NCBI GenBank assembly: GCA_965240325.2
Contig: OZ251227.1
Coordinates: 2,418,001 to 2,482,000 of the forward strand
DNA from: Rebecca billardiae RCC1528
Taxonomy: Eukaryota; Protista; Haptophyta
DNA: 64,000 nucleotides
Direction of reading: 5' to 3'
Shown one piece after another: positions 39,157-53,941 of the stretch. Each line of letters opens with the position of its first letter. The first letter of the stretch is position 1. The notes beneath the pieces were generated by a model. That model was not told the DNA's origin and searched no databases. It saw only the letters and a program-made list of their open reading frames with translations. The translations under genes were made by a program, and so were the position numbers.

Positions 39157-41676
39157 TCAGGAGCATTCGGGCAGCAGGCTGCCGAGCAGGGCGCCAACGC
39201 TGCCGGGCTGCGCGAGGTCAGCTTTGAGTAGCGCGCGTACGATCCTGTCGTGGCGCTCCGCCTCGTCCTGCGCGCTCGTTGCCGCGGCCGCCGCGATTGG
39301 CTGCTGCGACGCGATGCTCTGCCCGATCTCCGCGGCGCGCGCGAGGATCTGCTCGGGCACGCCGACGGCGCGCCCTACGTGCGCGGCAAAGCTCGACGTG
39401 CTCTGCCCGTCGATCATCTTGTACAGCAGGTGGACCGACTCTTCGGCCGCTCCGTCGACGCGCTCGACCATCGCCTGCATCGTCTTGGTCTGCAGCGGCA
39501 CACCGCGCATCGACGGCAGGTGCAGAAGCTCGGTGAAGTGCGTCGCGACGAGCAGCTTTGGGCGCCGCTCGCGCCGCGCGTCGAGCTCGAGCAGGAAGCT
39601 CGCGAGGAACGAGAGGCCGTCCGCAAAGTGCGTGCCCTTGCCAAACTCGTCGAGGATGAGCAGACTGCGCTCCGTGCTCGCGGAGAGCATGAGCGAGGCC
39701 TGGTGCAGGTCGAGCATGAAGGTGGACTTGGCGAGCGCGGCGCTCTCGCGCGTGAAGATGCGGCAGAGGATGCGGTCGACGACGCCGATCGTGGCGGACT
39801 GCGCGGGCACAAAGCTGCCGACCTGCGCGAGGAACGCGACGATGGCGACCTGCTTGAGCAGCACCGACTTGCCCGAGCCGTTCGGCCCGGTGAGCACGAG
39901 CGTGGACGGCGCGCCGGGCGCTCCGAGCGAGCAGTCGTTCGGGATGAAGTGCTCCACGTTCGGTCGGACCAGCGGATGCCACGCGCCGCGGAGCTCGAGC
40001 TCGCAGCCGCGAGTGAGCGTCGGTCGGCAGAGGCACAGGTCGTTCGCCGCGTGCGCGAGCGCGCAGAGCGCGTCGAGCTCGGCGAGCACCTCGAGCGACC
40101 AGAGCAGCTTCTCCGCCTTGTCCACGACCCGCTCCTCCAGCTCGCGCACGTAGGCGAGGTCATGGTCGATGATCTGGCTGAGGACATCGCCGACATGCAT
40201 GTCGAGATGTTTCATGGTACCGGACTTGCAATAGACACGGCCGTCGCCCGCCTGGAAGCCGTCCACACCCTGGGAAATGTCCGGCCGGCGCTCCTCCGGC
40301 AGCCGCTCGATCGCCTCAAGCAGCGCCGCGGGCGCCCGCATGAAGAACCCGAACTGCGGCACGTACACAGCCTTCAACTCAGCGAGCAGCTCGTCCGCGA
40401 GCCCGCCGAGCACACCGGACGCGGAGGCGTGCTCGAGTTCCGTACACTCGTGCAGCGTCGCGTCGAGGTCCCTGTACATCTGCATGAGCTGGTCGCGATC
40501 CTTATTGATGCCCTCGCTGATCACCACGCGCGAGGGCTCCGCCTTGCACGCCTCGAAGTTGACGCCCGACGCAATCAGCGAGCGCAGGCGCTCGAGCGAC
40601 GCAGCGACGTCGCTCGCCTCGAGAATCACGCGCAGCGCGCGCACCGCATGCGCTTCGCCCGCGGCCGGCGGATTGAGGCTTCTGAGGAGCTCGTGCACGC
40701 GGCGGAACGCCTGGCAGTGGTCCACGACCTCACGCAGGTCGCCCGCGCGCGCGCCGGCGGCGACGCGCTGCAGCGTGCGCCCCATGGCCTTCACACCGCC
40801 GAGTGCCTGACGCATGTGCTCGAGCAGCTCGCCGTTGCCCGCGGCCGTGAAGAAGGCCACCGCGTCGTGGCGCTCGGCGAGGATGACCTCGTCGTACGTC
40901 GGCGAGAAGAACCACGAGCGCAGCAGCACGTCGCCTGCCTTCGAGCGCGTGCGGTTCATCAGCGCGAAGAGCGACATGCCCTCCTTGGCGCGCCCGCCGT
41001 ACGCGCTCGGGTGCGAATGGCGCTCAAAGATCCCCAGCGACGTGAACGCGCCCGGGTCGAGCATCACGTTGCACCCGACGCTGCCTGGGACGATGCGGAC
41101 GATCGGCGGCGTGCCCTCACGCGCGAGGGACGCGAGAAGGCCGCCGACGGCGCGCAGCATCTCGCCGTCCTCGCGCAGCTTGGTGTAGTGGAACGCGCCC
41201 AGCTCGTCGTCCGGCAGCGAGTCCGGGCAGTCGGACGTGCGGAGGAAGCTGAGCGCGCGGCGCGAGGCGGCCACGGAGCACTCGGCCGGCTTGACGAGCT
41301 GCACGAGGTAGTGCCCGTCTGCGCCAGTGGCCACGTCGGTCGAGAGCATCTCGAGGAACGCCTCGTCCGAGGACGAGGGCGCGACCAGCACGGACGGGTC
41401 GAGCTCGCGCTTGAGCGCCTGGAGCTGCTCAAAGTGCGGCGCGCGCTCGGCAGCCTCGAGGCAGTGGATCTCACCGCCTTGCAGCCACGCGGCGCCGAGC
41501 CGAGAGCTCCGCGCTGTCTTGTGCCACACGACGCATAGCGGCGTCTCGGTGCGCTCTGGCTCGTCGTCGCCGTGGATGTTCGACGGAGCCGCTTCGGGCG
41601 CGAGGCCATCCTCGGCGCGGGGCGCGCTCGGGCCTGGCGCGTCCTCGACGTCCTCAACGTCCATCGGGGAGCTCAT
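39157..41676 (-). CDS. MSH5: MutS homolog 5 (meiotic MutS-gamma subunit)
   Basis: HPS...KEGMSLFALMN, Walker A TGPNGSGKSVLLKQVA, STFMLDLHQ, LILDEFGKGT, ATHF. It lacks the N-terminal mismatch-binding domain, as MSH4/5 do. Confidence 0.88.
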   Translation of the reverse strand: MSSPMDVEDVEDAPGPSAPRAEDGLAPEAAPSNIHGDDEPERTETPLCVVWHKTARSSRLGAAWLQGGEIHCLEAAERAPHFEQLQALKRELDPSVLVAPSSSDEAFLEMLSTDVATGADGHYLVQLVKPAECSVAASRRALSFLRTSDCPDSLPDDELGAFHYTKLREDGEMLRAVGGLLASLAREGTPPIVRIVPGSVGCNVMLDPGAFTSLGIFERHSHPSAYGGRAKEGMSLFALMNRTRSKAGDVLLRSWFFSPTYDEVILAERHDAVAFFTAAGNGELLEHMRQALGGVKAMGRTLQRVAAGARAGDLREVVDHCQAFRRVHELLRSLNPPAAGEAHAVRALRVILEASDVAASLERLRSLIASGVNFEACKAEPSRVVISEGINKDRDQLMQMYRDLDATLHECTELEHASASGVLGGLADELLAELKAVYVPQFGFFMRAPAALLEAIERLPEERRPDISQGVDGFQAGDGRVYCKSGTMKHLDMHVGDVLSQIIDHDLAYVRELEERVVDKAEKLLWSLEVLAELDALCALAHAANDLCLCRPTLTRGCELELRGAWHPLVRPNVEHFIPNDCSLGAPGAPSTLVLTGPNGSGKSVLLKQVAIVAFLAQVGSFVPAQSATIGVVDRILCRIFTRESAALAKSTFMLDLHQASLMLSASTERSLLILDEFGKGTHFADGLSFLASFLLELDARRERRPKLLVATHFTELLHLPSMRGVPLQTKTMQAMVERVDGAAEESVHLLYKMIDGQSTSSFAAHVGRAVGVPEQILARAAEIGQSIASQQPIAAAAATSAQDEAERHDRIVRALLKADLAQPGSVGALLGSLLPECS

Positions 41677-41995
41677 CTCGAAGCCGGCGCCTTGACGCTT
41701 GCCCGCTGGGTGGAAGGATCCGCCGGTCGGCGTGGGCAGGCAGCGCGTCCGCCGCCCAGTCAAGTCGCGCTGCGCCAAACGACTGTTGGCTGGGTCGGAC
41801 TCCGGATGTTCTGAATGTCCGGGTGCTCAGCCGCTACTGTAAACTGTACCGTCTCGCGAGCATCTCGATCGCAGATCTCGCGGCACCCGGGTCCCGGCGG
41901 CGGCGGCAGCCGCGCGAAGGAATCGGCGTCCCGTCTGACGAGAGCCCCGTCTACTCCGGGGTGGTGGCCGTGTTGCACGAGCGCTCGTGATTGAG

Positions 41996-45361: not shown

Positions 45362-46774
45362 TCAGCCAGACATGCTGAGCAACGTGGTAGTAGCGGCTTT
45401 TTCACGACGACTGGCCGGTCCGGTGTTGACGCTGACCCGCCGGGGCACCCCCCCAAAGAGCGAAGCCCTCCTTTCTGAGCCATCAGCGTCGCTGACAGAC
45501 GTCATGTAGTCCTTGCCATATGGATCGCCGGTGAGGCCGAACGTGAGGACGTAACGCGCGTGCGGCCACCCGCGATTCTCGATGAACTTGGAGTATCGAT
45601 CGACGAGCTGGATGAGCAGGATACCGCTGATGCCAGTACACTCGAACGCCCAGAACCAGTGCCCCCAGTTCGTATCAAAGAGTCCATGAATGATGACGAA
45701 CATGATCAGCTGCGCGGGAGGAGGAGGGGGCGATGCGCGTCTGTAATCACAACCCGCTGCCTGTCCGATGCGCACCGGCGGGCATGCGTGGAGTCGCCGC
45801 GAGCACGCACGACTGAAAAGCCGAACACTGAAACGTAGAGGAGCCACACGCAGTTGGGATGCAGCCCGTGCCTCGAGTCGCCATGGACCGTGCGGTAGTA
45901 CTTGCCAATCACGTGCAGGTACGTGTACGCCGCGATGGAGGCGAGACTAAAGCAGACCACGGAGACGAGGTGAGAGATCGGCATGTAGTCCGTGGAGAAG
46001 GCGAGGAAGAGTGCGAACGCTGTCTCGAAGATGGAGATCAGGATGAACGCGTACATGTAGCGGTCGTCGTTCTCGTCGTCCTCGGCGACGTTCTCGAGGA
46101 ACGCGCGCAGCCCGTACTCGGACCACCTGACGGTCGCGCCCCAGGCGCGCGACAGAGGAGATAGGGACGCGGGAGGAGGAGGCCGCGGACACGCCGACCG
46201 CGCGCGCGTGGGTGGTGGGCACACTCAGATGCATGCTAGCTGCGCCGCAGCAGCCGGCCAACCACTCGCGCCATCCACGCGCGCACGTGATGAACGAGTT
46301 GCCCTTGAACGCAAAGGCCATCATCCCCGTGGAGTGCGCGTTCGAGATGAACGAGGAGAGCGTGTACCCGATGGGCCTGGGGTCGCTGGGCACGCCGGGG
46401 TCCAGGCCAGGCGTCGCAAAGCTGTCGGGCAGACCGCAGTTGTGTCGCGTGTAGTGGCCTGGGACCCAGTAGACTTGCAGCGGCAGCGTCCATATGTAGA
46501 CAAACGGCACGATCGCGGCCCACAGGCCGAAGTGAAGATAGATCATCGCGCCGTGCCTGTACTCGTCCACCCTGAAGCGCTGCGTGCGGCCTTTCTGGAT
46601 GCTGGGAGGCGTCGGTTGCTCGGCCTGCAGCGGGCGCTGCGCAGATGAGGCGTCTTCACTCCCCTTTGGATCCGCATTGCCGCGCTCTGCGTCTGCCCCA
46701 CGCTTGCTGAACAGCCGAGGCGCCCGGCGTTGCCCACGCTGCGACTTGTTGAGACTGATGACGAAGGGGGCCAT
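45362..46774 (-). CDS. Multi-pass membrane protein, Frag1/DRAM/Sfk1-like (~383 aa). Exons: 46774-46287, 46126-45811, 45709-45362
   Basis: Two frame-preserving GT-AG introns and about six hydrophobic segments, with SSFIS, a conserved-looking His and WAFE. Confidence 0.7.
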
Positions 46775-47032
46775 CGGTGAGGCTCTCCCAGCTTGCTCAT
46801 CGGATTTTGGTGCTGTTAAAAGTCATACGCTCGCATTATTCGAGTGGGCTCGGTGCATATGATCATCATGCCTTTTCGGACGACTATGACGTAAATACGC
46901 GACTGCCACGTTTCAGAGAATTATGATAAGGGGGGACCGTCACACCATGACTGTCAAGCTTGAAACGGCACCCGGATCGGGCGACGAAAAAAGATCCCGC
47001 CTTTCTCGTCGCCATGCGCAGCATGCGCTCGC

Positions 47033-50000
47033 TCATCGTCGGCACTCGGCAGCATCAGTAGCGTCGCCGCCACCCGCCCACCACGTGGCGGCGTTAGTGT
47101 CGCGTACGGCGCGCAGCAGGCTGGCTCGCACGGGCTCCGGCGCCGGCTGCGACGACGCCGGCTGCGCTCTCGGGGCCAATCCTAGGCCTAGCAAGCTGGG
47201 CATGGAGCGGCTTGCGACGCGGGCAGTGGCCTCCGCCTCGGCCTCGGCCGCGTGGCGTGCGGGCGGCGACGCGGACGCGGATGCTGGTGGCTTGGCCGGC
47301 GCGAGCGGGCCGCGCGCTCTCTCGGCCGCGCCCTCGGACGACGGGCGCCGCGAGCGCGCGCGCTCGTCCTCGGCGTCGCGGCTGATCCACGCGGACAGCG
47401 GCGCCCAGCGCGCGAGCAGGGTCGCGTAGCGCCGCTGTCTCGAGCTGAGCTTACGCACGCGCGCCTCGGCCTCCGCCTTGAGGTTGGAGAAGAGGCGGAG
47501 CGCGCGCAGCATCGTCACGACGGTCATCACGCAGCCGACGGCAAGCGGCGCGCCGAGCCGCAGCAGCCGGCGGCGGCTCGCGCGGCGCGACTCCTTCACG
47601 TGCCAGTGGATGTCGCGCGCGAGCACGGCGGCGACGGCGTGCAGCGAATTGATCCGGCAGGTCTGATTGGACCACCAGTCCGCGAGGTCGATCTGGGGCG
47701 CGTGGTCGGGCGCGGCGCGGTCGCGCTCGATCGACGCGGCGGCGATGGCGGCCCACGCCTCGTCCTCGCCCACTGCCGTCACGCCGAGCTCCTTGCGCAG
47801 CGGGCGGAGCAGCTCCGCGCGCAGCCGCATCGCGCCGACGGCGCACGGCGCGCGCCGGTGCGCACCGTACGCGCTCGCCGCGCCCGGCGGCGCGAACGCC
47901 AGAAAGGCGGCGTGGTAGCCCTCCTGCTGCGCGACGATCTCCCGGAGCAGCGCGAGCGTGGCGAGGGGCACGCTCGCGCCCGCCGCGCGCGCGTGCGCCA
48001 GCTCGCCCGCGAGCAGCGCGCGCTCGAGCCCGGCCTTCTCCTTGAGCACCACCAGGTTGACATACGCGTACAGAGCGGGCGCGAGCGACTGGCGGAGCGG
48101 CGAGCGCATCAACTCCATCACCGCGTCGGTTGCGAGGGCCAAGAACTTCTTGTTGAGCGCGGTGTAGAACTCGACGGCGCGCACGTGCGGGAGCGAGGAC
48201 ATGCCGGAGGCGCCCAGGTGCGCGTGCGAGCCCAGCCACGAGCGCCACTCGTGCTCGGCGCCGCCTCGGCCGCCGCCGCCGCCGACGCCGCCGACGCCTG
48301 CCAGCTGCTGCCGCGCGGGCGTCGCGCGCGCGTCGCGCGCGCGGCCGAGCGCGAGCCGCCGCGAGCCGGGCAGAGCGGAGAGCTGCGCGCAGATGGACGC
48401 GTGCACGTCGGCGCCTGGCGTGCGCGGCGGGCGCGCGGGCGCGCACAGCTCGTCCACGACGTCCACGAGGTGCGCGCCGCCGTCCTCCGCCCCGCTCGCG
48501 ACCGCCTCGTCGCTTGTCGCCTCGCCGAGCGCGCCGCCGCTGCCGCCGCCGCCGCCGCTGCCGCCGCCGTCGCCGAGCGCGGCGCCGGCGTCAACGGGCT
48601 GGGCGGGCGCGCCGTTGTGCTCGGTCCACTCGGTGCGCCGGGCCGAGAGCTCGAGCACGTGCTCGATCACGCCCACCGTCGACGCGAGCGGCGCGGGCTG
48701 CGCCGCGGCGGTGTCGGCGAGTGCCGCGTGTTGAAGCAGCGCGCGGATCGCCTGCGACACGGCCGCGTCTGTGCGCGCGTACTGCCCGCCCAGCTCGACC
48801 GCCATCGTGCGGCTCTCGGCGGAGCCGAGGAAGGCGGCCATCATGCCCCGCTCGATCTGCGTCTCGTGCAGCGCGTTGCCCACGCGCAGCACCACGTCCG
48901 TCCCCACCGAGCGCTCCACCGTCAGCGACAGCTCCGCGCTCTCCGCCCACAGCTGATAGGCCTCAAGACCGGTCGCGCCGAGGATGACGAGTGCGCTCAC
49001 GCCGAGCAGCCACGGGATGCGCTGGGAGGCGCGGAAGAGGGAGGGGCTGTCCACGTCGCTCGAGGCGGGCGAGACGCGCTGGCTCGAGCCGCCGCCGCGC
49101 TCGCCCTCCAGCCGCGCGTACGCCGCCGCGTGCGCGTGCGACGCGGAGGACAGCGGCTCAGAACGTTCGGAGCAGCAGCCGGAGCAGCCCGGCTCGGACG
49201 CGCCGCCGTCCGACGCGCCGCAGGGCGCGCTGCCGCCGCTGCCGCTGCACTCGCTCGACGGGCGGCGCTCGGGGCGCGGCGGCAGCGGCGCCGCCGCCGG
49301 CGCCGCCGGCGGCCGCCCGAGCTCCGCGGCGCACGGCTCGAGCTCCGAGGGCGGGGTGGCTTCGGATTCGCTCACGGAGGGCATGGCGCCTGCGGACGCG
49401 GGCGCGCCCACCGCGGCGCTGCTGGCGGCGGAGCCGGCGGTGGTCTGGCCCGCCACGCGGAGCGGGAGCGCGGCGCTGCTGAAGCCGCCCGCGTACAGCC
49501 GCGGCCGCGCGCCGCGCATCCCAACCTCGCGGCACCGCCGCTTGTGCCCTCCCTGCGCCTGCGCTCGGAGCTGAGCCTTGAGCGCGTCGCGCTCGCGCGC
49601 CTCCGCGCGCTCGCGCTCGCGCTGGCGCTCGCGCTCGCGCTCGCGGCGCTGGCGCTGGAGGCGGCGCTCGCGCCGCGCCCACTCCCTCCGCGCGAGCGCG
49701 GCCGTCGCGACCGACGCGTCCGCCAGCACCGCGAGGACCGCGAGGCCGATCGCGCACAGCCCGATCAGAACCTTGATCAGGATGTCCGCCGTGAAGAGGC
49801 CGGCGGCGGTGACGAGGGCGACGCCGACGCGCGAGTGGACGGGCATGGCGCAGAACGAGCTCTCCGCGAGCCACGCGTGCGCGCACACCTCCTGCACCCT
49901 GTTCGCCGGCACGGGCGAGAGCACGCACGCAAACATGCCTGCGATCACGACCGCGAGCCGAGCGACGTCGTTTGCGAGCAGCGGCGTCGGCTCGTCCGGC

Positions 50001-50116
50001 GGGTCGGGCGCGGGCTTGACGCAGTCCGGCTGCTCCTCCTCGCCCGCAGCCTCGTCGCCCAGCGGCGCCACCGCCTGCGGGCGCCGGGCGCGCGCACGGC
50101 CCAGCCCGATGCCCAT
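47033..50116 (-). CDS. Membrane protein with a NIT (nitrate/nitrite-sensing) domain
   Basis: NIT signatures HETQIERGMMAAFLGS, QYARTD, FYTALN, KEKAGLERA, WWSNQTCRINSL lie between two TM helices. Additional N-terminal TMs and a coiled coil. Confidence 0.8.
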   Translation of the reverse strand: MGIGLGRARARRPQAVAPLGDEAAGEEEQPDCVKPAPDPPDEPTPLLANDVARLAVVIAGMFACVLSPVPANRVQEVCAHAWLAESSFCAMPVHSRVGVALVTAAGLFTADILIKVLIGLCAIGLAVLAVLADASVATAALARREWARRERRLQRQRRERERERQRERERAEARERDALKAQLRAQAQGGHKRRCREVGMRGARPRLYAGGFSSAALPLRVAGQTTAGSAASSAAVGAPASAGAMPSVSESEATPPSELEPCAAELGRPPAAPAAAPLPPRPERRPSSECSGSGGSAPCGASDGGASEPGCSGCCSERSEPLSSASHAHAAAYARLEGERGGGSSQRVSPASSDVDSPSLFRASQRIPWLLGVSALVILGATGLEAYQLWAESAELSLTVERSVGTDVVLRVGNALHETQIERGMMAAFLGSAESRTMAVELGGQYARTDAAVSQAIRALLQHAALADTAAAQPAPLASTVGVIEHVLELSARRTEWTEHNGAPAQPVDAGAALGDGGGSGGGGGSGGALGEATSDEAVASGAEDGGAHLVDVVDELCAPARPPRTPGADVHASICAQLSALPGSRRLALGRARDARATPARQQLAGVGGVGGGGGRGGAEHEWRSWLGSHAHLGASGMSSLPHVRAVEFYTALNKKFLALATDAVMELMRSPLRQSLAPALYAYVNLVVLKEKAGLERALLAGELAHARAAGASVPLATLALLREIVAQQEGYHAAFLAFAPPGAASAYGAHRRAPCAVGAMRLRAELLRPLRKELGVTAVGEDEAWAAIAAASIERDRAAPDHAPQIDLADWWSNQTCRINSLHAVAAVLARDIHWHVKESRRASRRRLLRLGAPLAVGCVMTVVTMLRALRLFSNLKAEAEARVRKLSSRQRRYATLLARWAPLSAWISRDAEDERARSRRPSSEGAAERARGPLAPAKPPASASASPPARHAAEAEAEATARVASRSMPSLLGLGLAPRAQPASSQPAPEPVRASLLRAVRDTNAATWWAGGGDATDAAECRR

Positions 50117-50314
50117 CCCGGCTGAGGCCGCCAGGGCGTGCGCGGACGGTCGCGAAGCAGAATCCGACGATGCGCGCACGCTTTCGGGCCGTCCCAGACG
50201 GCATCTCACATCAGGGATTCAGAGTCGAGACTTAACCGAGGGTTATTCGTTCAATAGGTTTGCAACTGTATTTCATCTGCGTGAGAAACTGAGAGGCTTT
50301 CGACTGCGTCGGCG

Positions 50315-51317
50315 ATGACGATGGCGGCGCACATTGGCGGCCCGCTGCGCACGGCTCTCGCGGCGGACGCCAGCGGGTGCTTCGTGGCGACGGCGGGCCC
50401 GCACGGCGTGGACGTGATCGACCTCGACTGGCCGTACGAGCCGCGCGTCAACTTCGCCCAGCCCGTGCACGGCGGCGGCCTGTGCGCGGTCGGCGCGATC
50501 GAGTGGTGCCCGCTGCGCGCGCACGAGGCGCTCGTGGCCTCGGCCTGCGCGCACCGCGTGCTCGTGTGGGATGCGTCGCGCGTCGGCGGCGCGCGCGCGC
50601 TGTGCGCCGCCCTCGAGACGCCCGATCCCGCGCTGTGCGTCGCCGGCCTCGGCTGGAGGCGGCGCGGCGCGTGTGAGATTGCGACGTGCGCCGCTGACGG
50701 CCGACTCCTGCTGTGGTCGGTCGCACAGCGCGCGAGCAGCGTGCCGAGCGCGACGATCGTCGCGCCCGCGCCCGCGCAGCAGCTCCGGTTCGCGCCCGAT
50801 CACCCCGACCTCCTCGCGTGCGCGCACGACGACGGTGTCCGCGTCTGGGACTGGCGCGCGCCCGGCGCCGCTGCCGTCAGCTTCGGGTGCGAGCCCGGCG
50901 CGCGCGCGGCGGCGGCGGCGGCCGTGGACTGGGGCGCGGACGAGCAGCGCGGGGTGGTGAGCTGCGCCGCCGCGGACGGCGCGGCCGAGTGCTGGGACCT
51001 CGCCATGCCGCGCGCGCCCTGGTGCCGCCTGCGCGCCTCCGATGCCGCCGAGCCCTCCGCCGACGGCGCGCGCTCAAGGCCAGGCACAGCGGCACCACTG
51101 CGCAGCGCGCCGCAGCGCGCGGCGGTGCGCGCGTCGCGCGCGCGCGACGGCGTGGTGGCCGTCTGCCGCGACGGCGCCGTCGACCTGTGGTTCCCGCACG
51201 CGCCGCACGCCGCCGCGGTGCGCGTGATGCCCTTCGAGGCGATGGAGGCTCGCGCCGCCGCGCTGGACCTCATTCCTGCGCGCGCGCTCAGCGACGGCGC
51301 CGCTCGGAGCGGAGTCG

Positions 51318-51350
<33 letters not shown>

Positions 51351-53941
51351 GTCCGACTGGCGTGGGAGACGGCGAGGAGGAGGCGTCGGGCGACGAGGAC
51401 GAGGGCGGGGCAGGCGAGCGGCTCGTCGCGTGGAGCCCCGACGGCGTGCTGCGCTGGTGGCGCGTGCACACCGTCCGCGCGCGCCTCCGCACGCAGCTGA
51501 CAGGCGCGCGCGAGGCGGAGGAGGCGGCGGCGGCGGCGGCGGCGGCGGGTCCGCCGGGCGGCGCCGCGGCCGCGGCCGCTGCTGCGCCCGATGGGTGCGG
51601 CGAGTCCGAGCGGCGCGCTGCGCCGAGCGCTGCGCGCGAAGAGGACGCCGCGCCCGCGTGCGGCGACGCCGAGCTCGAGGCGTGCCTCTCGGCCGAGTGG
51701 CGCGCCCTTGACGCGCTCGTGCTGCCGCGGCTCTCGCGCGGCGTGAGCGTCGCGCCGCGGGCGCCTGGCAGCGCGCAGCTGTGCGTGCGCGCGGCCGTGA
51801 GCACGCCGCGCGCGGGCGAAGGCGCGGGCTCGGCGCACGAGGCGTGCGCGCTCGCCGTGCGCTTCAACGTCCACTTCGCCCCCGGGTATCCGCGCACCGC
51901 GCGCCCCGCCTTCGTTCACGCTCCGGCGCCACGCGCAGACGGCGCGCGCGCCGGGCGCGCGGCGGCGGGCGGCGTGGCCGAGGCGGAGGGCGCGTCCGAG
52001 GCGGAGCGCAGCGCGGCGAGCCTGGACTGGGCCCTGAGTGTCGTGCTCCCCGCGATGGTTGCTGTGGCGCAGCAGCATGCCGGCCGGCTGTGCGCCGCCG
52101 CCTGCCTCGCCGCGCTCTCGCGGCTTGTCGACGGCGCGCGCGCGGAGCTGGCGGTGTCCGCGCGCTCGGCAGAGGGCGCCGCCGCGTCCGAGGGCGCGTC
52201 GGCGCTGATCGCGGCGGCGCGGCGCGGCGGCGCGCTCGCGGCGGCGCGCGGCGCGCTCATCGGCGGCACACACGGTGGCCCAAGCCCGGAGCGCCCGCTG
52301 GCGTTCGGCGCCGGCGGCGGCGCCTTGCCGCTCGGCGCGGCGCTCCCGGAGCGTCTAATGGAGGCGGGTGAGGACACCACGGTGCCGGCGCCGCGCACGT
52401 CGGGCGCGGCCTTCTGCGCGGGCGGCGTGCTAGTGATCTTCAGCTCGGCGAGCGCGGCCGCGGCCGCGCCGCACGCGCGCGACGAGGCGGTGCGCACGCT
52501 CGCGGACTTCCACCGGCTGCAGCTCACGCACGCGTACGCGCACGCATACGGTGGCGGCGTGAGCGCGCACGCGTCGCCGCCGCGCTCGCCCGCGCGCGCG
52601 GGCGGCGGCTCGGGCTCGGCGACGCCGGGGCGGAGCGGCGCGGGCGCGGCGGGCGCGGCGGTCGGCGCGCACACGGGCTGGCACTGCGCGGCGGAGCAGT
52701 GGCGCGGCGCCGAGGCCGAGGGCGGGCTGCTCTCCGAGCACGCGCCGCCGGCGTGGCTCGCCGCAGCGTCCGCGGCCGCCGCCTCCGACGACGACGACGA
52801 CGACGACTGCTCGTCTGAGGATGGCGGCCGCTCGGTGGCGAGCGCGCCCGGCGCGTCGCCGACCCTCGGGCGCGTGTGCATGGTGGACGCGTGCGCGCTG
52901 ATGCGGCTGGACCGCGCGCTCGGCGCGGCGTACGCGCTGCCCATCGGCGGGCTGCGCGCCGCCGAGTGCTGCGCGCACAACGCGCGCGCGGCGGGCGCGC
53001 GCCACCGAGCCGACCTCGTCACTGCCTGGGGCTTGTGCGCCGACCTGTGCGCCAGCGCCGAGCTCGCGGCGCGCGGCGGCGCGGCGGCGGCGAGCGTCGC
53101 GCCGGCGGGCTGGCTCGGCACAGAGTGTGGCGCGCGGCTCGCGCGCGCCGTGCTCCGCCACTACGCCACGCTCGGCGACGTGCAGTCCGTCGCGGCGCTC
53201 TCCTGCGTCCTTGCCGCCGTCGCGCCCGACGCTCTGCTGGCAGACGGGGCGTTGGGCCGGGGCGTGCCGGGGCCGGTGTGGTTCTGGCGAGTGTACGCAG
53301 AGCTGCTGCAGCGGTGGGGGCTGCACCACAGGCGCGCGGAGCTGCACAAGATGGGCGCGGGCGCCGCCGCGCCCGAGCAGCAGCGCGCGTCCGGGCGGCT
53401 CGAGTGGGTCATGGGCGCGGACGCGGCCGCGGCAGCGGACGGCGGCGCGGCCGCGGGCAGCGGCAACAGGCCGCGCCGGCCGGAGGGCTCGGCGCGCGCC
53501 GCCGGTGGGCCGCACGCGCGCGCGCTGCAGTGCACGCTGTGCCACACGTCCGTGCGCGGCCGCTCGGTGTTCTGCGTGCGCTGCGGCCACGGCGGCCACC
53601 TCGAGTGCCTGCGCGCGTGGTTCGAGTCCGGGCGCACCGCGTGTCCGGCCGCGTGCGAGTGCGCGTGCCTCTACGCAAATAGCAGCGCGCCGCGGCCGCC
53701 CGTGCACGCGCACGCGCACGCGCACACGCCGCTGCCAATCAACCAGAGGACGGCCCCGCGCGCGCCGGCCGCGCACCTGGCCTCGCAGCCCGGCGCCGCC
53801 ACACGCCGCGTGCTTGCCAGCGGGCTCATCGATCGCACCCCGCTCGCGCCGACGCCGGCTGGGCACGCCGACGGCGCGGCGGATGATTGGGAGCTGGTCG
53901 ACGGCAGCTATGGGCTCGGCCCGCACGCGATTGCCGTCTGA
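50315..53941 (+). CDS. WDR59: GATOR2/SEA complex subunit WDR59 (Sea3)-like
   Basis: N-terminal WD40 repeats, RWD-like segment (FAPGYP...PAF), PAPRTSGAAF, CAHNA, GDVQSVAALSCV, YAELLQRWGL, and a C-terminal CTLC...CVRCGHGGHLEC...W...CPAACECAC RING. Confidence 0.85.

Follow-up and report, generated by a model that had tools for sequence, protein, structure and literature searches.

An algal membrane protein with a bacterial-type NIT domain and no recognisable output domain: a candidate partner-read nitrate/nitrite receptor

Introduction

A gene encoding a nitrate/nitrite-sensing (NIT) domain flanked by transmembrane (TM) helices and lacking other domains (TM-NIT-TM) has been reported in the marine alga Pelagomonas calceolata by Guérin et al. 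(2022), and that account and a later one describe its expression as raised when nitrate is low, both in the ocean and in culture, with pelagophyte and dictyochophyte homologs that likewise have no kinase or catalytic domain (PMC9481584; PMC12054182). Three other kinds of NIT protein carry their output on the same chain. NasR of Klebsiella oxytoca (4AKK) is a soluble, cytoplasmic, nitrate-responsive antiterminator that combines its NIT domain with an RNA-binding ANTAR output in one protein, and its residues E175 and R176 have been named as predicted nitrate-pocket residues (PMC7496416). In bacterial NIT methyl-accepting chemotaxis proteins and histidine kinases, a periplasmic NIT domain lies between two TM helices, the last sensor helix runs through the second TM, and HAMP plus MCP-signal or kinase domains follow. 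In the NIT-guanylyl cyclases of placozoans, annelids, and other animals, an extracellular NIT domain between TM helices is combined with a C-terminal class III cyclase domain (PMC7400543; bioRxiv 10.1101/2023.08.02.551600).

Here we analyze a gene in a 64,000-nucleotide stretch of contig OZ251227.1 (hereafter the window), which a sequence-only reading had described as coding for a eukaryotic NIT-domain membrane sensor. The gene is real and intact, and it encodes an algal protein that crosses the membrane four times, with a bacterial-type NIT domain as its predicted outward-facing part.

Results

Gene and coding signal

The features of the gene are summarized in Table 1; the open reading frame and all elements listed in the sequence-only reading were recovered at the positions given there. 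On the minus strand the frame stays open upstream of the ATG at 50116, as far as a GTG at 50209, and no database entry was identical to the protein taken from either start. The GC content at third codon positions (GC3) is about 0.95 up to residue 910, and its value of 0.96 in the low-complexity linker indicates that this region is coding as well. A 957-aa open reading frame opposite the gene had no family match in Pfam or NCBIfam, and its codon-position GC pattern is that of an antisense shadow. No nitrogen-assimilation genes were found in the window, and a neighboring WD40-RING gene gave no tblastn match in the loci of four relatives. A search with the MSH5 protein of the window recovered this protein itself at 100% identity and no other match above 43%.

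Table 1. Features of the NIT membrane protein gene in the window (residues numbered from the ATG at 50116)
Feature	Position	Strand	Residues	Details and basis
Complete single-exon coding sequence, NIT membrane protein	47033..50116	-	1027 aa	Stop 47033-47035; open reading frame list, Pfam NIT, GC3
TM helix 1 (TM1)	49919..49978	-	~47-66	Family-conserved R53, G60; hydropathy, AlphaFold helix 47-66 (pLDDT 75-90)
Short extracytoplasmic loop	49832..49918	-		Conserved C78, F88-C89; family conservation
TM helix 2 (TM2)	49757..49831	-	~96-120	Starts R96-V97; conserved F108, membrane-embedded D111; hydropathy
Charged Arg/Glu helix	49553..49687	-	144-188	Sequence; AlphaFold helix 93-188 (pLDDT 87-95)
Cytoplasmic linker, low-complexity	49049..49546	-	191-356	pLDDT < 50
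TM helix 3 (TM3)	48953..49018	-	~367-388	Leads into NIT; invariant E385 at outer end; hydropathy
NIT domain	47579..48934	-	~395-846	Pfam, profile against 4AKK, VIA-align; pLDDT 90+ outside loops
First pocket motif, HETQIERG	48845..48868	-	417-424	Alignment to 4AKK
Second pocket motif, KEKAGLER	48020..48043	-	692-699	Alignment to 4AKK; conservation
TM helix 4 (TM4)	47498..47566	-	~851-873	R850 at outer edge, P857; hydropathy
Conserved juxtamembrane helix	47387..47491	-	876-910	R886, Y897-x-x-L900, R903-W-A-P-L-S908; pLDDT ~90
RWAPLS motif	47393-47410	-		Within juxtamembrane helix
C-terminal tail, low-complexity, unconserved	47036..47386	-	911-1027	Mostly pLDDT < 50
3' spacer	46775..47032	-		258 bp, 53% GC, then ATG of next minus-strand gene; sequence and composition

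An algal family of stand-alone NIT proteins

An exhaustive HMMER search yielded 280 matches. A quicker homologue search, run with the NIT region and with the family alignment, returned none and also missed members already in hand, so that its blanks are uninformative; low-complexity words perhaps crowded its 8,000 candidates. About 20 relatives, including proteins of Chrysophaeum and Aureococcus and marine metagenome proteins, keep the same architecture, which bears out the idea of a stand-alone NIT protein in an alga; P0001-P0005, P0159, and others are NIT-only, and a kinase or cyclase is present in none of the approximately 20. The window protein is 33-45% identical to any family member found (33-38% to those of Aureococcus over the matched stretches, too low for Aureococcus to be the source of the window), and the next-best sequence relatives are bacterial NIT chemoreceptors and kinases (e.g. 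P0014, P0015, P0018, P0019, and P0042; 30-34% identity). No animal NIT-guanylyl cyclase was found among the matches examined. In a quick tree, the window protein formed one clade with Chrysophaeum KAJ8608681.1 and Aureococcus KAH8093432.1, KAH8052936.1, and KAH8064171.1 (SH-aLRT 96), within which it branched outside the Aureococcus and Chrysophaeum-type clade. The family clade stands apart from the bacterial NITs, the exception inside it being P0010, an unlabelled partial metagenome protein.

NIT fold and ligand pocket

The NIT assignment, made originally from motifs, was confirmed by a two-stretch match to Pfam NIT (PF08376; E 3.9e-21, 76.9 bits against a cutoff of 24.9). A profile of the family alignment, composed of the window protein and its relatives, matched NasR 4AKK at E 1e-40. 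When the single sequence was searched against the PDB with phmmer, nothing above noise appeared (Sul3 and others, E > 0.5); a profile was needed to reach 4AKK. The AlphaFold model agreed with this result: residues 380-846 were aligned by VIA-align with 4AKK_B over 275 residues (Z 27.1, rmsd 3.3 Å; the second-ranked structure had Z 10.3), and 4AKK was also the top Foldseek match (probability 1.0). The domain is thus predicted to adopt the double four-helix-bundle fold of NasR. It contains two low-confidence, low-complexity loops (~503-544 and ~584-633), which are separated by a conserved helix and do not form a single insert.

Both Glu-Arg motifs picked out in the sequence-only reading as QIERG and GLERA are present, as parts of the two pocket motifs in Table 1. 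Across 97 NIT sequences, conservation reaches at least 90% at E422, R423, K692, E693, E698, R699, Q731, and R766; the first pair, E422-R423, is found in all 77 bacterial sequences and likewise in every family member covering the site, and E698-R699 is invariant in the same 77. E698-R699 align with E175-R176 of NasR, and E422-R423 probably correspond to its E49-R50, in a numbering deduced from the 27-residue offset of the 4AKK chain. No residue that is near-invariant in bacterial NIT domains has been lost, and both Glu-Arg pairs attributed to the nitrate pocket are among those kept; by analogy with these domains, nitrate or nitrite is the probable ligand of the algal NIT domain.

The same receptor might instead bind a different small anion, or else nitric oxide or one of its derivatives. 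Platynereis NIT-GC1 responds to an NO donor by making cGMP, but only with its NIT domain in place, and it was proposed to be a sensor of NO or derivatives, although nitrite or nitrate could not be excluded as the true ligand (bioRxiv 10.1101/2023.08.02.551600). For nitrate, direct binding has been documented only in bacterial NIT domains of the NasR type, from which the algal family is set apart by a long stem branch (0.93) and by substitutions of its own near the conserved motifs, one example being C820, a position occupied by K, A, or Q in bacteria. Nevertheless, every pocket residue shared with NasR is kept and, according to the available accounts, the Pelagomonas family member responds to the nitrate level (PMC9481584; PMC12054182); we therefore regard a different ligand as unlikely.

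Membrane helices and the N-terminal hairpin

As had been read from the sequence, the NIT domain is flanked by two hydrophobic helices, TM3 and TM4, both helical in the model, and is preceded by two extra N-terminal TM helices and an Arg/Glu-rich helix. The earlier reading missed that these two N-terminal helices form a hairpin that the family conserves as a module and that is no incidental extra. Position 78 is Cys in 11 of the 11 family members that cover the region and position 89 in 11 of 12, and the loop bearing them is probably closed by a disulfide, judging from this conservation; D111 within TM2 is Asp in 10 of 12. An atlas search with the hairpin gave no usable match. In the model the Arg/Glu helix prolongs TM2 on the cytoplasmic side, and the same region is basic-rich in the relatives. 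The linker that follows is unconserved, varies in length among the relatives, and is probably disordered.

Basic flanks border TM2, TM3, and TM4 on their cytoplasmic sides, and the basic flank upstream of TM3 in the relatives (KKKRRE) places the N-side of TM3 in the cytoplasm. Because the NIT side just before TM4 is also basic (K841, R844-R850), the positive-inside rule alone leaves the orientation of TM4 unfixed. R850 and P857 are found in 19 and 18 of 20 family members, respectively, and neither is among the five commonest residues at its position in 77 bacterial NITs. The family has four cysteines of its own, all on the predicted outside, two of them (C758 and C820) in the NIT domain. The model shows one unbroken helix from residue 811 to residue 922, through TM4.

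The cytoplasmic helix

After the last TM, the window protein continues as a helix to about residue 922 and then as a low-complexity tail. The sequence-only reading had noted a short helix and such a tail; both are present, but it overlooked that the helix carries a strongly conserved motif, in which W904 and P906 occur in 19 of 19 family members and Y897 and L907 in 18 of 19 each.

This motif could be a sorting signal in a protein that transduces no signal itself and instead serves as an accessory subunit for ligand binding or for trafficking, perhaps alongside a nitrate transporter as its partner, or perhaps as a receptor cycling through endocytosis. The YxxPhi pattern is a tyrosine-based sorting signal for AP complexes. 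Y897-x-x-L/V900 resembles it, most relatives have an acidic, Ser-rich stretch after Y-x-x-L/V (e.g. SWMLDDDSHDDDSS), and the conserved TM hairpin with its buried D111 could dock another membrane protein. On the other hand, the motif sits in a confidently predicted helix, while YxxPhi is read in extended form; the tail of the window protein itself is not acidic, and the invariant W904-x-P906-L907 is, to our knowledge, part of no known sorting motif. An accessory or trafficking role is thus improbable, and we favor a signaling receptor.

Absence of an output domain and the end of the gene

No recognisable output domain had been noticed in the protein, and Pfam and NCBIfam showed none, as in the relatives. 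Apart from NIT, no family matched at E < 0.1 when the whole protein and its N- and C-terminal pieces were searched; HAMP, MCP-signal, and HisKA/HATPase domains were absent after the second NIT-flanking TM at E up to 1, and no Guanylate_cyc match was found in the protein, nor a domain-bearing open reading frame downstream on the same strand. Matches to Ctr (E 0.1) and Sul3 (E 0.18) in the charged helix and first NIT helices were far below the cutoffs and were rejected.

An output domain would still be missed if the gene model were incomplete, that is, if the tail were read-through into an intron and the domain lay on further 3' exons. Open frames are cheap in sequence of 77% GC, the GC3 of the tail (residues 911-1027) is somewhat lower than that of the rest (0.82 against 0.95), and several GT dinucleotides occur in it. 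However, coding periodicity continues in the tail, with GC3 of 0.75-1.0 as far as about residue 1010, so that the tail is probably translated; GC3 then starts to fall some 20 codons before the stop, from 0.8-1.0 to about 0.5 just past it, and this collapse makes the end at 47033 look real. The next minus-strand open reading frames begin with their own ATG after the spacer of 53% GC and contain no Pfam domain in the scan within the window. In the relatives, about 19 from genomes of 58-73% GC, every protein with its C-terminus present ends some 20 to 160 residues past RWAPLS in a tail of variable sequence, and in Chrysophaeum taylorii the annotated gene covers an unbroken open reading frame of 3,006 nt. 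Among same-strand open reading frames of at least 80 aa, none exceeds 175 aa in the 3 kb below the L003 gene or the 3.6 kb below the L001 gene, by length only. The Pelagomonas gene model, which drew on transcript data, likewise shows TM-NIT-TM and nothing more (PMC9481584). Since the coding signal stops at the stop codon, the relatives end alike, and the Chrysophaeum frame is uninterrupted, there is good, though indirect, evidence that the single-exon gene end is real; hidden 3' exons are disfavored, and an incomplete model is very unlikely.

A decaying or non-functional gene copy, which the long low-complexity loops breaking up the NIT domain might suggest, is hardly credible against 1027 uninterrupted codons, GC3 of 0.95 with second-position GC of about 0.5 in the structured parts, and retention of every family-invariant and NIT-invariant residue.

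Discussion

Proposed mechanism

Taking these results together, we consider it fairly probable that the product of the gene is an algal receptor of the TM-NIT-TM family, crossing the membrane four times, that responds to nitrate or nitrite and is read by a partner. The N-terminus would be cytoplasmic, and TM1, the short Cys-Cys loop, and TM2 would form a hairpin, followed by the basic helix and a disordered cytoplasmic linker of about 170 residues. TM3 would lead out to the NIT domain of about 450 residues, located extracytoplasmically at the cell surface or in a lumen, and TM4 would return the chain to the conserved cytoplasmic helix ending in R-W-A-P-L-S and to the variable tail. Nitrate or nitrite may bind between the two four-helix bundles and shift the last NIT helix, which, as in bacterial chemoreceptors, is predicted to run on past TM4 and reach the cytoplasm. 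As a result, the juxtamembrane motif could become differently exposed or paired, and the TM1-TM2 hairpin might also pack differently; a partner protein would read the change, with no enzymatic output on the same chain; signaling through partner proteins had also been suggested by the sequence-only reading.

A further-reaching reading takes the family as a distinct eukaryotic receptor type, in which the output is a membrane and juxtamembrane unit, made up of the TM1-TM2 hairpin with its buried Asp and disulfide loop and the Y-x-x-L...R-W-A-P-L-S helix, that couples extracellular nitrate to a further pathway. This is conceivable, and we advance it only tentatively.

Significance

The perception of external nitrate by eukaryotic phytoplankton is poorly understood, and across large parts of the ocean it is the nitrate supply that limits production. 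A nitrate-perception pathway could plausibly start with a surface NIT receptor that has no enzyme domain, and such a receptor has so far been mentioned only in passing, for Pelagomonas. The present analysis adds a defined architecture, candidate sites for mutation (R423, R699, D111, the four cysteines, Y897, W904, and P906), and the peptide 876-910 as a possible bait for the partner. This is an incremental advance, since both the class and the link of its expression to nitrate are already in the literature. A pelagophyte/dictyochophyte-related origin has been proposed for part of the haptophyte gene set. If the placement of the host in the haptophytes holds, the family would be common to pelagophytes, dictyochophytes, and haptophytes, which would extend the range given in 2022 and fit this proposed origin.

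Comparison with known systems

The window protein shares with NasR the NIT fold and the Glu-Arg pocket pairs. It differs in that its NIT domain is predicted to be extracytoplasmic, is anchored in the membrane on both sides, contains two long loops, and has no output domain. With the bacterial NIT chemoreceptors and kinases, it shares the TM-NIT-TM topology and the sensor helix that runs on through the membrane; where they have output domains, the window protein has some 35 conserved residues after its last TM and then a disordered tail, and it has an added TM hairpin at the N-terminus. By analogy, the protein may work like the sensor half of these bacterial proteins, of which it is not a member. 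The animal NIT-guanylyl cyclases are likewise eukaryotic, with an extracellular NIT domain between TM helices, but their cyclase domain is missing from the window protein.

The closest match in design is the Pelagomonas type. The link is made through named pelagophyte relatives in the tree, the Pelagomonas protein itself being compared by description, and the host, if a haptophyte, lies outside the range given in PMC9481584. The N-terminal hairpin, the four cysteines, and RWAPLS were not found in the available part of that account. The features shared by the family that are new here are the N-terminal hairpin with its Cys-Cys loop and membrane Asp, the two family-specific cysteines of the NIT domain, and the cytoplasmic helix with Y-x-x-L and R-W-A-P-L-S. 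The TM-NIT-TM design of algae has already been published in pelagophytes, and the window protein is a further member of this type rather than a new kind of receptor.

A NIT domain in the minus-strand frame

The window has a GC content of 68%, similarly high to that of Diacronema lutheri (73.25%; PMC8379373), and at 47000-50000 the value is 75-81%. Because the sequence is so GC-rich, long ORFs overlap on both strands here (1058 aa, minus; 957 aa, plus). The 957-aa ORF opposite the NIT gene had no family match in the domain-family scan, and plus-strand ORFs across this stretch exhibited an antisense codon pattern in codon-position GC. The minus-strand ORF matched Pfam NIT (E 3.9e-21), and its codon-position GC was 0.77/0.61/0.93 for the reading frame as a whole, compared with about 0.75/0.5/0.95 for the structured parts alone. 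On the basis of the Pfam match and codon-position GC, the minus-strand frame alone is coding. Numbering from the ATG at 50116 gives a protein of 1027 aa.

The sequence-only reading, a NIT-domain membrane sensor with two conserved ER motifs, was confirmed by the Pfam match, the motifs and the fold. The motifs are HETQIERG (residues 417-424) and KEKAGLER (residues 692-699). A PDB search with a profile that combined the protein with its relatives and with 77 bacterial NIT segments matched NasR alone (4AKK; E 1e-40). In the profile alignment, with an inferred 27-residue numbering offset, E422-R423 aligned with NasR E49/R50 and E698-R699 with NasR E175/R176, the latter pair being named as predicted nitrate pocket residues (PMC7496416). 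Eight residues (E422, R423, K692, E693, E698, R699, Q731, and R766) were at least 90% conserved in a 97-sequence alignment, and H417, Q420, G424, Y651, W814, and T819 are likewise common to the protein and bacteria. The AlphaFold model (mean pLDDT 66.6 overall, 90+ in the NIT helices) found 4AKK as its best Foldseek match (probability 1.0), and its residues 380-846 superposed on 4AKK_B with Z 27.1 and rmsd 3.3 A over 275 residues, the next entry having Z 10.3. Within the domain, a conserved helix lies between two loops of low confidence and low complexity (about 503-544 and 584-633); since GC3 across this stretch was 0.96, they are translated sequence and not introns.

Relatives and phylogeny

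With residues 360-900 as query, exhaustive HMMER searching gave 280 proteins, of which the best five have 804-1124 aa, 39-45% identity and NIT as their sole domain. Among these five is KAJ8608681.1 of Chrysophaeum taylorii (Pelagophyceae), whose annotated gene covers a 3,006-nt ORF without interruption. Weaker matches included three hypothetical proteins of Aureococcus anophagefferens with apparently truncated models (KAH8093432.1, KAH8052936.1, and KAH8064171.1; 501-566 aa); the NIT parts that they lack were present in the same locus by tblastn (L004:8001-10226, the Aureococcus locus), and the models have the look of wrongly spliced predictions from DNA of very high GC content. Marine metagenomes supplied the remaining relatives, together with Logan assemblies and MMETSP transcripts, and the next tier comprised bacterial NIT chemoreceptors and kinases. 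Two search hits, P0017 and P0007 (733 and 507 aa), are halves of a single family member called separately on one 32,297-bp Logan contig, which suggests an intron or frameshift in that organism's gene. In a protein cluster atlas, NIT is the only common Pfam family in several Pseudomonadota clusters of about 336-356-aa proteins, which may be stand-alone NIT proteins.

A quick maximum-likelihood tree on NIT columns placed the algal proteins in a single clade apart from 74 bacterial segments (SH-aLRT 96, stem length 0.93). P0010, a partial metagenome protein not labelled as family beforehand, was placed within it. The protein of the window was sister (support 93) to a clade uniting Aureococcus and Chrysophaeum-type sequences (support 95).

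Family architecture and proposed function

Outside the NIT core, the family shares an N-terminal hairpin with R53 and G60 in TM1, C78 and F88-C89 in the short loop, and a TM2 that begins R96-V97 and contains F108 and D111. Within the NIT domain, C758 is Cys in 15/18 family members vs 5/77 bacterial sequences, and C820 in 19/20 vs 0/77. TM4 has R850 and P857 in common, and the cytoplasmic helix R886, Y897-x-x-L900 and R903-W904-A-P906-L907-S908, with W904 and P906 in 19/19 members. Every relative with its C-terminus present has a short unalignable tail past the RWAPLS motif and then a stop (that of P0001, another search hit, lies only about 20 residues past it). These NIT-only relatives bear out the earlier statement of no recognisable output domain, and the comparison argues strongly that none follows RWAPLS.

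Because basic stretches follow TM2, precede TM3 (KKKRRE in relatives) and follow TM4, we infer that both termini and the long linker are cytoplasmic and that the Cys loop and NIT domain are outside, although the NIT-side flank of TM4 is basic too. Four conserved cysteines on the putative outer side would fit a secretory-pathway ectodomain. In the model, the last NIT helix continues unbroken through TM4 as far as residue 922, the same arrangement as in bacterial TM-NIT-TM sensors. On this basis, our proposal is that a ligand bound at the Glu-Arg interface would displace the continuous helix; a separate protein would then read the signal at the conserved juxtamembrane motif, and the TM hairpin with its buried Asp could be part of the read-out. 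Ligand sensing with partner signaling is a reasonable but putative reading.

There is a small chance that the ligand is other than nitrate or nitrite, as an annelid NIT-cyclase showed a NIT-dependent response to an NO donor (bioRxiv 10.1101/2023.08.02.551600). A trafficking or accessory role, which we hold to be rather improbable, would draw on the Y-x-x-L and subsequent acidic tail of most relatives, which resemble a sorting signal. Beside the sensing and partner-signaling reading, an incomplete gene model is unlikely. Splicing was assessed by composition and comparison with relatives, which end alike; GC3 is 0.75-1.0 until about residue 1010 and drops to 0.45-0.6 in windows spanning and past the stop at 47033, beyond which lies a 258-bp spacer of 53% GC. 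Decay of the gene is also unlikely.

Genomic neighborhood

Features of the window and of the Chrysophaeum taylorii locus (L001)
Feature	Position	Strand	Remarks
MSH5-type MutS homolog	39160-41826	minus	MutS_III + MutS_V domains; named matches are MSH5
Multi-pass membrane protein gene, downstream neighbor	45362-46774	minus	Three overlapping ORFs, different frames
NIT gene	47033-50116	minus	
WD40/zf-RING_16 gene, divergent neighbor	50315-53941	plus	WD40 propeller N-terminal; zf-RING_16 C-terminal, E 3.4e-12
Ferredoxin-nitrite reductase gene	L001:2527-4188	minus	NIR_SIR domains
NIT family gene	L001:8001-11006	plus	

Past the spacer, ATG 46774 starts a separate gene with a GC content of about 60-66%, clearly below the 77% of the NIT gene; its product had no Pfam match, and its three frames are probably due to introns. 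On the 5' side, 198 bp separate the NIT ATG from the divergent gene, which is consistent with a WDR59/WDR24-type GATOR2 subunit. A tblastn search of the NIT loci of four relatives turned up no WD40-RING homolog next to the NIT gene; the head-to-head pairing is therefore not a conserved one. The other genes are ordinary nuclear ones (MSH5-type MutS, purple acid phosphatase, methyltransferase, bromodomain protein, and cytosolic carboxypeptidase), with no nitrogen-assimilation gene among them in the 64-kb window. MSH5 is a meiosis-specific gene; its best non-self relative was only 43% identical, so the protein collection holds no close relative of this genome, and the same gene is present on Logan contigs of run ERR14847151. 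In C. taylorii, 3.8 kb separate the NIT gene from the divergent ferredoxin-nitrite reductase gene; in this single genome, a functional linkage is possible.

Comparison with known NIT proteins

Bacterial receptors and NasR are the proteins in which NIT was defined, and in animals the domain occurs joined to guanylyl cyclases (PMC7400543), as the sequence-only reading had correctly stated. Guérin et al. (2022; PMC9481584) describe three NIT genes in Pelagomonas calceolata, two with kinase domains and the third a stand-alone transmembrane form that is upregulated in low nitrate, and 60 homologs, all from Pelagophyceae, Dictyochophyceae or a single putative cryptophyte transcriptome. Culture work published in 2025 bore out the upregulation of the transmembrane form at low nitrate (PMC12054182). 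The algal stand-alone class was thus already described, and the gene of the window belongs to it. Added here, and absent from the consulted passages of the published accounts, are the arrangement with four TMs, the cysteines specific to the family and the RWAPLS helix. The protein branches outside Aureococcus and Chrysophaeum, the two named pelagophytes, and if the haptophyte placement of the host is true, the known range of the family widens to haptophytes.
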